From the IMG/VR virus record IMGVR_UViG_3300022602_000024, positions 290,430 through 354,429 of that record: DNA of 64,000 nt; one strand, written 5' to 3'. The notes below the pieces were generated by a model. The model saw only the letters and a program-made list of their open reading frames with translations. It made no database searches and had not been told where the DNA came from. The first letter of the stretch is position 1, and each line of letters starts with the position of its first letter. The position numbers and the translations under genes were made by a program. Positions 4,253 to 29,665 of the stretch are shown here, piece after piece.

Positions 4253-5139
4253 AGCGTCTCCAGTATTGCACCAGCAATGGCAGCAGTATCAAAATTGTTG
4301 TTGCAAGGAGTGTTTCCTTTTTTGCAAATCAATCTACTAACTGGACGTTGCTGAATGTCATTACATCCTGCACAATCTTCTAAAGTCTGTATAGCCACTG
4401 CGTTTTTACCATCTTCCCAATTTCGGATTGGCACAATGACTTCAGGACGTAGATGTGTTAGTAATGCAATGATATGTGTATCACTTGCAGCCGCACACCA
4501 ATAAGGACCCGAATCAACCCCAGCAAATGCTCGTGCACCATCACACAGCACTTTTATCTGTTGGTTATTAAACCGGGCTCTTGCGTCAACAAACAAAGGA
4601 TGATCAACAAAATGATCAGTCGAGCCACCAACACATACAACCTTAAAGTCGGCTTTTTGTTTAAATACTTGAGCATATACATCTAACCACACATCCATAG
4701 TAATATTCTTAGCAGTCCAATGCCAATTACGCATATGAACCACAATGTATTGATCTAACTCATTTTGTCGTTGAAACTCAGCAACTGCAGCTTGATCTTC
4801 ATTAGATGGGAATAATTCTACTCCGTGATTTAGCGAATTAACACCAAACGCACGATACATATAATTCTTTTGATAATGTTGCGTAGGATTAAGTTCGTAT
4901 GCATTATCCAAGTTGATGTATATGTCCCAACCTGCTACATTGGGAATTTGATCCACTGGGAAAATGTTTCTAATATGCGGGTTGTTGCGATATACTTCAG
5001 CAAAGTCTGTAGCCACGTCAATATTTGCGTTGGATCCATATTTTAGTTTTAATTCTCTTACTACTGCGGTGCTCATGATAACATCGCCAATGGCCGCACG
5101 ACGTTGCACTAATATGTTAATTGGTTGTTCTAATTTCAT
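4249..5139 (-). CDS. glycosyltransferase family 9 (heptosyltransferase-like)
   Basis: RRAAIGDVIM and GVDSGP motifs; C-terminal Cys cluster. Confidence 0.85.
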   Translation of the reverse strand: MKLEQPINILVQRRAAIGDVIMSTAVVRELKLKYGSNANIDVATDFAEVYRNNPHIRNIFPVDQIPNVAGWDIYINLDNAYELNPTQHYQKNYMYRAFGVNSLNHGVELFPSNEDQAAVAEFQRQNELDQYIVVHMRNWHWTAKNITMDVWLDVYAQVFKQKADFKVVCVGGSTDHFVDHPLFVDARARFNNQQIKVLCDGARAFAGVDSGPYWCAAASDTHIIALLTHLRPEVIVPIRNWEDGKNAVAIQTLEDCAGCNDIQQRPVSRLICKKGNTPCNNNFDTAAIAGAILETL

Positions 5140-14477: not shown

Positions 14478-14750
14478 TGTACTAATAAGTTTGAGCACAA
14501 TACATCTGCTTTTCGACTGTGGACCACAATGTGTGTTGGAGCGACCAACAACCACTAACTGAGCAAGCTCAGTATTGTTCATGGAATCTTAAACGTTTTC
14601 GCAGTTTTAAAATCTAATATACCCTCGGGAGTACCCGAATCCGCCTATCCAGCGCACGAGGTATGGGTTGTGAATTGCTTCACTACTGCTACTAAGCCTA
14701 CCACACGTATCAGATAGTCGCCACACTTTGTGCTCAAACTTATTAATACA
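14478..14750 (-). ncRNA. unassigned ~270-nt structured ncRNA
   Basis: 23-bp closing stem (14478-14500/14728-14750), internal hairpins, own sigma70 promoter just upstream. Confidence 0.7.
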
Positions 14751-16254: not shown

Positions 16255-16330
16255 TGGTGGTAATAAGTAGAATCGAACTACTGACAGGCGGCGTATGAAG
16301 CCACTGCTCTACCAACTGAGTTAACGATCC
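16255..16330 (-). pseudogene. chimeric/defective tRNA with CAU anticodon
   Basis: D, anticodon and T arms pair; the acceptor stem GGATCGT/TATTACC pairs at only 2 of 7 positions. Confidence 0.75.
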
Positions 16331-25991: not shown

Positions 25992-26621
25992 TTATTTGAC
26001 TATTACAAATGTTGTAAAACACCAATTGGCATTGGCGATGTATACTTCTGAAAATCCAATGCTTTGGAATTTTTTAGTATACCAATCTACAGATTCTGGA
26101 AACATGACTCCTACCAAGGAATCTGCTTTTTCTTTGATTTCTTTTCTGCTGACACCATGTTTGAATTTGTATTCATGATACTGCTCTAGTGCCAAACCTG
26201 AATTTTCTGTCTTTTCTGACAATATCAAAAAAGCACCAGGCAACATTGCATTATATACACTTGTCAAATAAGATTCTTTATCTTGTATAAAATGCAAAGT
26301 CCAATTACACAATACTGCTGAAAATTTTACCGCAGTGTCAGGAAACTCACTAGTGCAATAATATGTGGCATAGTTGGGCGGGCATTTTGCCAGCATGTCT
26401 TGACTATTATCCACTGCATGTATATTAGCGAAACCAGCAGAGTGTAATCTGTTAACAGTCTCACCAATGGCACACCCAATTTCCAATATGGGATCAGAGT
26501 GTTGTAACTTTTGTTTACAAAAATCAACTGACAACTCTAACACACGATCGTAATCGGGTATATGTTGCCTTGCATGTTGATTAAACAACTCTGCTATGGT
26601 GTTGTTGAATTTCCATTCCAT
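25992..26621 (-). CDS. CmoA-like SAM-dependent enzyme
   Basis: W.F...A..F...IPDY, EIGCAIG, VDNS..M, NWTLHF, LILSEK, K...G.S..EI..K collinear with CmoA. Confidence 0.85.
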   Translation of the reverse strand: MEWKFNNTIAELFNQHARQHIPDYDRVLELSVDFCKQKLQHSDPILEIGCAIGETVNRLHSAGFANIHAVDNSQDMLAKCPPNYATYYCTSEFPDTAVKFSAVLCNWTLHFIQDKESYLTSVYNAMLPGAFLILSEKTENSGLALEQYHEYKFKHGVSRKEIKEKADSLVGVMFPESVDWYTKKFQSIGFSEVYIANANWCFTTFVIVK

Positions 26622-27436
26622 ATGATTACATTTTCTTGAGTTAAATCCTGGCTGATCGGTTGAGGAAAGAATTTTGCCATATATCTATTATGATTTTTAA
26701 TATCATAGTAATACGGTAATTCTGTTTCTGCTTGACTGTATAAACTATCATCATATCCAAAATTATTTTGTTTCATCAACAAGATCAATGCAGATAAACT
26801 TACAATACTTGCAGTAATACGTATGCTGCCTTTTTCAGACACACCTTGCATACGAATACGTTCGCTAGGTTGTATAATACTTAAAGTTTTGCTCACTGCC
26901 GATCTTTGTTCATCTGTGGCATTGGGAAATAATCTCCGATACCCATTGAATGGATGTACTGTGTCAATGATAATTGTTTCTTTGGCTAATCCAGCTATTT
27001 TGCGTACAAAATCAAAACTATCAAATACTGCATACAGCATGCCACTGGCAATTACAATGTCAAAATGTTGATCGCTTGTGTAATCAGCAAAACTTGATTG
27101 GACAATATTGTATTGCCCAGGATCATAATACTTTTTGAATAGTTGTTCGCTGGGCAATGAATAACGTTCTAGTTGTTCTATCCCAGTGTAATGGCGAGCA
27201 CCATTTGCCAAACACCATGCACCGGTTGCTCCCATACAGCTACCTATATCCAGTACTGTTTTATCTTTAATCAAATCTGGCGGCAACATAACACGATGCC
27301 TATTGAACATAAATTCTGGATTTATGTTGTAACTAAGACTTGGCCCAGATTTGCCTGGACTAGGTACTATTACTTTCCTACCTATTCTATCATCAGTTAA
27401 AACCCAATCTGGTTGTGTTTCAAAAATGTTTATCAT
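26594..27436 (-). CDS. class I methyltransferase, CmoB-like motifs
   Basis: KTVLDIGS..G, GA...TGIE, FDIVIASGMLY. Confidence 0.65.
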   Translation of the reverse strand: MINIFETQPDWVLTDDRIGRKVIVPSPGKSGPSLSYNINPEFMFNRHRVMLPPDLIKDKTVLDIGSCMGATGAWCLANGARHYTGIEQLERYSLPSEQLFKKYYDPGQYNIVQSSFADYTSDQHFDIVIASGMLYAVFDSFDFVRKIAGLAKETIIIDTVHPFNGYRRLFPNATDEQRSAVSKTLSIIQPSERIRMQGVSEKGSIRITASIVSLSALILLMKQNNFGYDDSLYSQAETELPYYYDIKNHNRYMAKFFPQPISQDLTQENVIIWNGNSTTP

Positions 27437-27477: not shown

Positions 27478-27608
27478 ACCATATAGAAACACACTCGGCC
27501 ACGCTCTGAACCTGGACTCTTAGTAATGTGTTTTTATGTGGTGGACGCCTAGATACTATCAACGCCCTGGGATTGTTAGCTACCACAGGACCGAGCCTGA
27601 ACAATCTC
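27478..27608 (-). ncRNA. structured intergenic RNA(s), including an Ala-type microhelix ending in ACCA
   Basis: GATTGTT/AACAATC stem, GGGCGTT..GGCGTCC-ACCA, then an 18-nt imperfect inverted repeat. Confidence 0.45.
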
Positions 27609-27619
27609 TTTACTAAACT

Positions 27620-27706
27620 TGGTGGATGAGGTTGGACTTGAACCAACAATGCCATTACGACGGAAGATTTACAGTCTCCTGGGGTTACCAATTTTCCTAC
27701 ACATCC
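27620..27706 (-). tRNA. tRNA-Tyr(GUA)
   Basis: Cloverleaf, long variable arm, GTA anticodon, CCA. Confidence 0.94.
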
Positions 27707-27716
27707 ATAACTAACT

Positions 27717-27792
27717 TGGTACATCGTACGAGATTCGAACTCGTGTACCCGCCGTGAAAGGGCGGTGTCCTAGGCCTCTAGACGAACGATGC
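27717..27792 (-). tRNA. tRNA-Glu(UUC)
   Basis: Cloverleaf, TTC anticodon, CCA. Confidence 0.96.
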
Positions 27793-27797
27793 ATATT

Positions 27798-27925
27798 TGG
27801 CGCTCTACAGGATTCTCACCTGCTCACTGAAGACCCCTATAGCGGGGTTTTTATCTCTCTACTGCCATGAGTTGCGAACTCACCGTAGAACCCGAGTTGC
27901 GAACTCGGCGTGGAAATATCAGAGC
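27798..27925 (-). ncRNA. tRNA-like ncRNA (128 nt) with a T-arm and GCCA end but a non-tRNA interior
   Basis: GCTCT/AGAGC acceptor-like stem, GCAGG-TGAGAAT-CCTGT arm, two GAGTTCGCAACTC hairpins. Confidence 0.7.
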
Positions 27926-27932
27926 ATAAACT

Positions 27933-28007
27933 TGGCGGTCCCAAGGAGAATCGAACTCCTATCAACGGCGTGACAAGCCGCTATACTAACCATTATACTA
28001 TGAGACC
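27933..28007 (-). tRNA. tRNA-Asp(GUC)
   Basis: Cloverleaf, GTC anticodon, CCA. Confidence 0.95.
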
Positions 28008-28010
28008 AAA

Positions 28011-28268
28011 ACTATATTAAAATATACTACAGGAATACATGTATTGTATTTAAAGACATCTCTTCTCTTACGCAACACACACATTACAGTCAGAATAGTC
28101 CACCTCGCCGCGATCTTTTTCGCGTTTCCCTTTGCTTGTTACGGCCTAGGTATACGTGCATTGTAACTGTACAACCCTGTGATGTCTCACATATTATGGA
28201 CGAAACCGGACGTCGATAGCTGTACAGTACCTAGTGGTCTGATAACCTGCAGTACATTTTAATATAGT
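28011..28268 (-). ncRNA. unassigned ~258-nt structured ncRNA
   Basis: 23-bp closing stem with 2 G-U pairs on the minus strand; nested helices and a potential pseudoknot. Confidence 0.7.
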
Positions 28269-28343
28269 ATGTGGGCATCGAGTGCTTTTGTTTAATAGTA
28301 AGGGCATCTCCCTTACTACCCACAATACTATATTAAATTTAAC

Positions 28344-28374
28344 TTTTTAAAGAACAAGTGTTAATTTCTTAACA
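28344..28374 (-). promoter_or_regulatory. boxB-like hairpin plus boxA (Nus antitermination site)
   Basis: TGTTAA-GAAA-TTAACA hairpin, then TGTTCTTTAAAAA, just after a promoter. Confidence 0.65.
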
Positions 28375-28381
28375 TGTATGT

Positions 28382-28410
28382 ATTGTAGCACTAGTTGAAT
28401 TAAGTGCCAA
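28382..28410 (-). promoter_or_regulatory. sigma70-type promoter for the ncRNA/tRNA array
   Basis: TTGGCA-17nt-TACAAT with TG extension. Confidence 0.65.
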
Positions 28411-28432: not shown

Positions 28433-28541
28433 CTGTATCTTAAAGCATATTGGTGTCATACACATATTCAATATGTGTATTGCCCCGTCAAGGTTTATCA
28501 ATCCTCCGGCTTTGTTTCGTCCAATATGCTTTAAGATACAG
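28433..28541 (-). ncRNA. unassigned structured RNA with a perfect 21-bp closing stem
   Basis: CTGTATCTTAAAGCATATTGG inverted repeat enclosing two hairpins. Confidence 0.55.
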
Positions 28542-28678
28542 AGTGTTGCCACTCTGCAGATAGGATCGTGTCCTACCCAGGAGTCTTAGTAACTGGTTAC
28601 CGCCCAGCTTTCATGTATCCTGTCCGCCCGTTCGTGCTTTTTTAAGTGAGCACAGGACCTCGTTCCCTGTAACACTTT
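28539..28678 (-). ncRNA. unassigned multi-hairpin GC-rich RNA
   Basis: CCTGT/ACAGG, CTGG/CCAG, GTAGGA/TCCTAT and CAGAGTG-GCAA-CACTCTG stems. Confidence 0.5.
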
Positions 28679-28682
28679 AGTA

Positions 28683-28844
28683 TTAACGTTTGTGCGTATC
28701 TAACTTTCTAGCCATTTCAGCCAAGGCTCGTAGATGAGCTTCTGCACGTTGTACCTTATCTTCCATCAACTTCATTCTCTGCTCTGGTGTTAAAATCAAA
28801 CCAGGAACAAATTGTTGATGAGTTTGCTTTTGTTCTAACATCAT
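28683..28844 (-). CDS. small helical protein (53 aa, MMLEQKQTHQQFVPG...), first gene after the attenuator; not in ORF track
   Basis: Manual translation; AAGGA RBS. Confidence 0.65.
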   Translation of the reverse strand: MMLEQKQTHQQFVPGLILTPEQRMKLMEDKVQRAEAHLRALAEMARKLDTHKR

Positions 28845-29087: not shown

Positions 29088-29216
29088 TTAAATGACTTCG
29101 TATTCGTCTTTACCGCAACCACATTCGGGACACAAAAAGTCCTCGGCTAGATCTTCCCATTTGCCTTCTAAGATTTCATCGTGGACATGTCCACAAACTA
29201 CGCATACGTGATCCAT
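29088..29216 (-). CDS. rubredoxin (42 aa); not in ORF track
   Basis: MDHVCVVCGHV...WEDLAEDFLCPECGCGK; TAATG coupling to rubrerythrin. Confidence 0.92.
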   Translation of the reverse strand: MDHVCVVCGHVHDEILEGKWEDLAEDFLCPECGCGKDEYEVI

Positions 29217-29665
29217 TATAGTGCCTCCAATTTTGCTTGATATGCTTCAGCATGACGCTTTTCAATTTTGGCCAATGCTGCAAAACGCTTTTCTGCTTTG
29301 GCTAGAATAGCCGCAAATTGTTCTGCGTGCTCTTTGCTTTCGGCGATTTGCTCGGCGGCTTCGTAAGCCGCTGCAGTATTGCCTTCATCTTCAGCTTGTG
29401 CTTTGAATTCAGGATACATTGTAGTGAATTCATAAACTTCGCCTTCAATGGCTTTTTGCAAACATTCAGCAGTACTGGGCTTGCCAATCAGCAATTCTAA
29501 ATGCCCCCAAGCGTGTAACAACTCTTGATTAGCAGTATGCTCAAAATGTTGTGCAATATCTTCGTGACCCTCTTCTCGGGCAATTTTTGCAAAATAACGG
29601 TATTTTGTGTGAGCCTGTGACTCGCCAGCAAATGCCGCTTCTAAGTTTTTAATAGTAATGCTCAT
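29216..29665 (-). CDS. rubrerythrin
   Basis: NLEAAFAGESQA, E..H, EGE.YE...MYP.F, E..H di-iron motifs. Confidence 0.95.
   Translation of the reverse strand: MSITIKNLEAAFAGESQAHTKYRYFAKIAREEGHEDIAQHFEHTANQELLHAWGHLELLIGKPSTAECLQKAIEGEVYEFTTMYPEFKAQAEDEGNTAAAYEAAEQIAESKEHAEQFAAILAKAEKRFAALAKIEKRHAEAYQAKLEAL

Follow-up and report, generated by a model that had tools for sequence, protein, structure and literature searches.

A new phage RNA family linked to tRNA-Glu

In this study, we examined a stretch of minus-strand sequence from a tRNA gene cluster of a large uncultured phage. The window analysed here comprises 64,000 nucleotides, the last 64 kb of a 354,429-bp IMG/VR virus record (IMGVR_UViG_3300022602_000024, positions 290,430 to 354,429) that is estimated to be 98% complete and thus represents a jumbo phage. 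It carries 21 tRNA genes, all on the minus strand. The element of interest, at 28011-28268 on the minus strand (258 nt as RNA), lies in a 675-nt stretch free of conserved ORFs between a small ORF and tRNA-Asp (GUC) at 27933-28007, with tRNA-Glu (27717-27792) and tRNA-Tyr (27620-27706) following downstream. The 140-nt spacer between tRNA-Asp and tRNA-Glu contains two tandem copies, at 27869-27915, of a 22-nt unit with the palindrome GAGTTGCGAACTC. Directly downstream of the tRNA-Asp/Glu/Tyr group are two overlapping SAM-methyltransferase genes (25992-26621 and 26594-27436, minus strand), and homologs of the 280-aa protein carry Methyltransf_9 (PF08003), the CmoB-type tRNA U34 modification family, among other methyltransferase domains. 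On the other side, between tRNA-Met and the element, lie what by eye appear to be a 42-aa rubredoxin-like ORF with two CxxC motifs (29088-29216, minus strand) and a 149-aa rubrerythrin/ferritin-like ORF (29216-29665, minus strand). Further away, next to tRNA-Gln, a partial tRNA-like match at 16266-16323 on the minus strand (Rfam tRNA, 32.4 bits, model positions 8-63) was not called by ARAGORN and may be a truncated or unusual tRNA.

The element is closed by an inverted repeat, 28011-28033 and 28246-28268, of 23 nt with 21 Watson-Crick pairs, both mismatches being G·U on the minus strand. The minus strand folds at -84.1 kcal/mol (z -5.71, 0 of 200 shuffles as good), compared with -67 kcal/mol (z -3.58) for the plus strand. 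Only four inverted repeats of this size exist in the whole 354-kb genome, and three of them, at 14478-14750, 28011-28268 and 28433-28541, lie in the 16-kb tRNA region, whereas the arm motif is not a genome-wide repeat, occurring three times and only within this intergenic region. The first of the three (minus strand), probably the other large RNA of the first-pass annotation, is a second stem-closed structured element of 273 nt with 23-nt arms (MFE -96.8 kcal/mol, z -5.56), situated 51 nt downstream of tRNA-Ser(UGA), and is matched neither by the family descriptor nor by the family model described below. Searches against Rfam 15 reported only tRNAs at gathering score and nothing credible at E up to 10 for the window or up to 1 for three relative subtypes. 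In line with the first-pass annotation, which had proposed a structured non-coding RNA just upstream of tRNA-Asp, the element has no known-family match, and its helices are conserved with compensatory changes in homologs. It is, however, not an orphan.

Finding relatives required several approaches. Searches of the region and of a typical member by blastn and megablast against GenBank phages (50,697 records for blastn) gave no match beyond tRNAs, and a 17-mer from the element core gave only chance hits. Synteny through flanking proteins revealed only an identical copy in another sample (loci L002/L029 of those we retrieved, numbered here with the prefix L) and a 90% relative that stops short of the element; the methyltransferase homologs are mostly not next to tRNAs, although two of these loci, L031/L032, later proved to hold a new subtype. 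Scanning viral contigs with a 22-mer of the adjacent tRNA-Asp gave 20 loci, and in several of these the sequence upstream of tRNA-Asp is a stem-closed module whose 3' arm ends exactly at tRNA-Asp +1. Three of these module types share the layout of the window element, and a metagenome scan added two more members. A covariance model of one subtype (R1) showed that the family starts at the last base of tRNA-Glu in all these relatives. In some, a second, unrelated stem-closed module lies between it and tRNA-Asp: such modules of 120-142 nt with perfect 16-18-bp closing stems are found at L007 670-789, L008 1176-1296, L009 (121 nt upstream of 6008) and L012 6905-7046, and end exactly at tRNA-Asp +1. 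RNAalifold on three near-identical sequences merely returned their minimum-energy fold.

Neither R1 nor two sequence-only nhmmer profiles detected the window copy, and we therefore tested its membership explicitly. A descriptor was written from the invariant features of eight non-window members, namely UUR directly after P1, P2 of 5-6 bp, P3 of 4 bp, UAGGU, then P3', a 4-5 nt bulge, P2', 1-4 nt and GUAAUG. It hits all eight members, hits the window element at the same offset after P1, and hits nothing else in 709 kb of genome (both strands), against 0.025 hits per simulated genome. Interestingly, when run over all loci it also identified a fourth subtype (249 nt) in L031/L032, which had been retrieved for an unrelated reason; this copy lies 6 nt upstream of tRNA-Glu, and the outer part of its P1 (CACUAUAU/AUAUAGUG) resembles that of the window element. 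The same methyltransferase gene pair is near the family element in L031/L032, and in L031 a tmRNA (4296-4643, minus strand; Rfam beta_tmRNA, 123.7 bits) lies next to this gene pair. A pattern built from family motifs then retrieved 36 viral contigs, 33 of them new, including contigs of 331-367 kb, while giving only two chance hits in 185,579 prokaryotic genomes, indicating that the family is phage-restricted. Finally, a covariance model built from 32 members with the window copy excluded (R2, 223 positions, 48 pairs) hits 28014-28265 on the minus strand at full length (model positions 1-223) with 48.4 bits and E about 1e-12. The window copy is the most diverged of 42 hits, the others scoring 92-226 bits, and as it lacks several conserved family motifs it could be decaying. 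In total, the family comprises at least 37 distinct sequences (208-258 nt) on uncultured viral and metagenome contigs, some of 330-367 kb.

In the shared architecture, a long closing helix P1 (18-24 bp, conserved in sequence as well as in pairing) closes two three-way junctions joined by P2-P3. Invariant junction nucleotides are UUR, UAGGU and GUAAUG, and ACAYGAA is present in all members but the window copy. In the window, the P1 5' arm occupies 28246-28268 (RNA positions 1-23), its outer ACUAUAU being able to pair instead with the leader, and the 3' arm occupies 28011-28033 (RNA 236-258), ending 3 nt before tRNA-Asp +1. The conserved 5' core at 28229-28245 consists of UUA (28245-28243), the P2 5' strand UCAGA (28242-28238), the P3 5' strand CCAC (28237-28234) and the invariant UAGGU (28233-28229). 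It is followed by the P5 hairpin at 28163-28230 (RNA 39-106), in which GUA-CUGUACAG is paired with UUGUACAG-U-UAC; its tip is window-specific, with two small hairpins (GACG/CGUC and UGUGA/UCACA), and lacks the UGACGG/GCCG loop of the family. The conserved 3' core at 28082-28103 contains the P3 3' strand GUGG (28103-28100), the bulge ACUAU (28099-28095), the P2 3' strand UCUGA (28094-28090), CU, and the invariant GUAAUG (28087-28082). The 3' domain at 28034-28081 is in the window one irregular G·U-rich hairpin, resembling the L011/L056 subtype (GUAAGAGAAGAGAUGU against GUAGAGAUAGAUGU), which has its own version of that domain. The window copy is a reduced, diverged version that keeps P1, UUA, P2, P3, UAGGU, the base and main stem of P5, the bulge and GUAAUGUG. 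It has ACAAUGCA, different tip hairpins and no P7 or P8, and all their pairs are flagged non-canonical in the model alignment.

Of the helices listed in the first-pass annotation, the closing stem (P1), TCAGA/TCTGA (P2), CCAC/GTGG (P3) and ACTGTACA/TGTACAGT (P5) correspond to family helices, whereas GACG/CGTC and CGCG/CGCG, although present as complementary segments, lie in variable regions. Contrary to that annotation, the helix CTAGGTA/TACCTAG is not supported, since UAGGU is an invariant motif whose GU pairs with the base of P5, and no partner is conserved in other members. The pseudoknot proposed between AGACATC and GATGTCT (RNA positions 82-88 and 209-215) is likewise not supported: the complementarity is present, but it lies in window-specific sequence and is within chance, as 63% of dinucleotide shuffles of the interior contain at least one perfect 7-nt complementary pair.

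The family structure covaries strongly. On eight sequences, 96.4% of cells are paired against 82% in shuffles, and 30 pairs change on both sides. On 39 distinct rows, 94.6% are paired against 78.6% in shuffles, 35 of 48 pairs show changes on both sides (280 such cells against 75 in shuffles), and sliding the partners gives only 30-41% paired. These alignments were fitted to the structure by the model, which favors the structure, but the margin is large, and the covariation in P2, P3 and P5b is also visible in the raw sequences. In a fixed window of the inner 18 bp of P1 across 34 members, we found 45 G·U against 6 A·C on the tRNA-sense strand. A DNA-level palindrome predicts symmetry, so the pairing is selected in RNA of the tRNA strand. 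Natural variants of this phage in three DNA runs are few, with 1 substitution in 258 nt against about 11 in the flanking 630 nt in one run (X5) and 6 in another (X14). While the former hints at purifying selection, of the 7 variants three keep pairing through wobble, two clearly break a predicted pair, one of them in P1, and the others fall in a loop or in weakly predicted pairs, such that these data are uninformative alone.

The genomic context of the family is unusually informative. Of 37 members, 20 begin at the last base of tRNA-Glu and one begins after tRNA-Gln, while 8 lie within 10 nt upstream of tRNA-Glu and 10 within 10 nt upstream of tRNA-Asp; five have Glu on one side and Asp on the other. 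In total, 34 of 37 abut tRNA-Glu or tRNA-Asp, counting L037, whose tRNA-Asp starts 11 nt downstream; two of the other three sit at contig ends, and all are within 300 nt of a tRNA. The other neighbor varies (Tyr, Lys, Cys, Ala, Gly), so the Glu/Asp link survives shuffling of the arrays. In members that follow tRNA-Glu, P1 continues 3-6 bp into the tRNA's own 3' end, where (U)ACC pairs with a GGU(A) tail that follows the element in every case, even when no tRNA-Asp follows. In first-in-array members such as the window copy, the same pairs are ACU/AGU, a compensatory change. Closure of the whole spacer by a long stem is specific to this family and is not a general property of inter-tRNA spacers. 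Nevertheless, five related viral records, one of them 91% complete, lack the family's 5' signature, so the element is dispensable and an accessory feature.

Upstream of the window element, we identified by a consensus scan a sigma-70-like promoter, TTGGCA-17-TACAAT, at 28382-28410 on the minus strand; its function is inferred. Of the 13 first-in-array members, 8 have such a promoter, matching at least 10 of 12 consensus positions, 73-116 nt upstream. A conserved leader follows (GUUCUUUAAAAAGUUAA...UAUAGU; 28339-28391 in the window), and the promoter-leader block is 94% identical in L018 and 89% in L013, where it directly precedes tRNA-Glu. Next comes a hairpin, at 28251-28344 (minus strand) in the window, in which the leader's UAAUAUAGUAU pairs with the outer part of the P1 5' arm and encloses a small hairpin, explaining the third local copy of the arm motif. 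The same layout, with a covarying inner stem and an outer stem that uses the outer 7-8 nt of the P1 5' arm, is present in all 13 first-in-array members and represents a conserved alternative to outer P1. These findings support transcription of the element as the first structured unit of a tRNA operon, although expression is unproven: no RNA run was listed for the element, and the one metatranscriptome examined, from a sample in which this phage is absent, has zero depth on it and covers only shared tRNAs and the leader block.

P1-like stems also occur nearby without the family core. At 28433-28541 (minus strand), a mini-module has a 21-bp perfect stem whose sequence resembles the family P1, with UGACGG in its interior (25.5 bits to R2, P1 only), and at 27481-27539 (minus strand), downstream of tRNA-Tyr, a second P1-like hairpin (19 bits) begins with a sequence resembling a CCACCA tRNA 3' end. 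A similar 73-nt hairpin is found right after tRNA-Gln at L015 1648-1720 and L026 5474-5546. A suspected second copy of the element at 28545-28700 has no UAGGU or GUAAUG and was rejected.

Taken together, 28011-28268 on the minus strand encodes a folded RNA whose family fold is conserved through compensatory changes, with pairing on the tRNA-sense strand and tight linkage to tRNA-Glu/Asp. Its function is unknown, and the following reading, which we consider about as likely as not, is inferred. Most likely the RNA is transcribed with the tRNAs from the sigma-70-like promoter about 115 nt upstream and cut out with the tRNA precursor, P1 bringing its two ends together so that the tRNA-processing machinery defines them. 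RNase P, cutting at tRNA-Asp +1, would leave P1 plus 3 nt, while the cut on the other side would come either from maturation of the tRNA-Glu 3' end or, in the window, from a cut at the leader hairpin, possibly by host RNase III acting on the 23-bp duplex; as the phage encodes no RNase III, that step depends on an unknown host. The conserved core would then act as a specific three-dimensional module functionally coupled to tRNA-Glu/Asp. Our best guess is that it masks or gates maturation of the neighboring tRNA ends in the precursor, and possibly persists as a stable released RNA that binds an unknown partner. A more far-reaching and unlikely, but highly interesting, possibility is that the family specifically recognizes or gates tRNA-Glu, by pairing of its ACC(A) 3' end with the GGU tail present after the element in every member that follows tRNA-Glu, the same pairing logic as the RNase P L15 loop or the T-box UGGN bulge. 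All members but the window copy also present an invariant GAA, the Glu codon, in a junction strand. It would then be the first phage-encoded RNA that senses, masks or processes one particular tRNA, possibly catalytically, and so controls the supply of phage tRNA-Glu during infection.

Other explanations appear less likely. The interior might have no function of its own, the element being only a structural spacer or processing stalk whose long duplex lets host RNase III and RNase P separate neighboring tRNAs and insulates their folding. The unrelated inserts at the same place in relatives, the P1-only hairpins and the concentration of long inverted repeats in the tRNA region are consistent with this, but the interior is conserved across four diverged subtypes, with invariant junction motifs and compensatory changes in P2, P3, P5, P5b, P7 and P8, which is more than a stalk requires. 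About equally doubtful is a self-cleaving ribozyme that processes the flanking tRNA in cis, cutting either at its own 5' boundary to release the tRNA-Glu 3' end, as proposed for HDV-like theta ribozymes of gut phages (PMC10879173), or at the tRNA 5' side. The first-pass annotation had regarded the complexity of the element as typical of ribozyme-like RNAs, and such a reading would fit the 20 of 37 members that begin within 1 nt of the tRNA-Glu 3' end, the same geometry as theta ribozymes, as well as the conserved junction nucleotides, the two conserved GACGG-type loops, and the burial of the CCA end in P1, where exonucleases alone could not reach it. However, no Rfam self-cleaving class matches even at permissive thresholds, the family is much larger than known small self-cleavers, 14 members including the window copy have no tRNA upstream, and the window copy has lost several of the conserved motifs.

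A cis-regulatory leader, riboswitch-like or tRNA-sensing, that controls expression or maturation of the phage tRNA operon by switching between the leader hairpin and the full P1 seems also unlikely. It would be consistent with the promoter-proximal position of the window copy and of 12 other members, with the covarying leader hairpin that competes with outer P1 in 13 of 13 first-in-array members, and with the conserved junction nucleotides of the three-way junctions. Nevertheless, there is no recognizable expression platform, as no terminator-like site follows P1 on the minus strand; most members (20 of 37) sit after the first tRNA, not before it, and have no leader hairpin; and no riboswitch or T-box model matches. 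Least likely is a miniature transposable element acting as DNA, with the closing stem as terminal inverted repeats and the P1-only hairpins as deletion derivatives. Although the P1 sequence itself is conserved and recurs around variable interiors, presence is patchy among related phages and the position relative to the tRNAs varies, the strand asymmetry of the P1 mismatches is not predicted by a DNA-level repeat, and the internal helices covary. Further, there is one full copy per genome without dispersed copies, no target-site duplication was seen at filled versus empty sites, and no associated transposase was seen. A Y RNA or YrlA (Ro60-bound RNAs with a long terminal stem) was likewise not supported, given the absence of an Rfam hit and of a TROVE domain in the 98%-complete genome, control genomes being positive; the phage also encodes no RtcB.

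Phage tRNA islands are known to harbor enigmatic structured RNAs. GOLLD and ROOL are orphan, highly structured, protein-free RNAs of unknown function encoded by phages and often near tRNA islands (PMC12286853), and were discovered through covariation in metagenomic sequence. Neither Rfam model matches, the present family is 208-258 nt whereas GOLLD often exceeds 800 nt (PMC12286853), its architecture is different, and its base-exact linkage to one particular tRNA (Glu) is not reported for GOLLD or ROOL. RNAC and RNAD of phage T4 (species 1 and 2 RNAs) are small stable RNAs transcribed from a phage tRNA region whose role is still unknown (PMC3014915); they have no known tRNA-Glu linkage, and the search of GenBank phages found no similarity. 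The theta ribozymes are placed within 1 nt of the 3' end of phage tRNAs and are proposed to mature that end in cis (PMC10879173), and 20 of 37 members of this family have that placement. In contrast to them, this family has no HDV-like fold, is three to four times larger and is specific to tRNA-Glu, and the window copy sits upstream of a tRNA, not downstream. A large survey of IMG/VR reported candidates of only 29-151 nt (PMC10690425), so the family as a whole is not among them, though fragments might be. What is new is a compact family of about 220 nt with exact linkage to tRNA-Glu/Asp, a closing helix that pairs with the tRNA's own CCA end, and a conserved alternative leader hairpin. It also shows that jumbo-phage tRNA arrays contain more than tRNAs, which matters for annotating these genomes. 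In this respect, the spacer between tRNA-Asp and tRNA-Lys has a conserved length in several relatives (253 nt in L007, L008, L009, L011 and L026, or 257 in L028 at 943-1199) and may hold a further conserved RNA.
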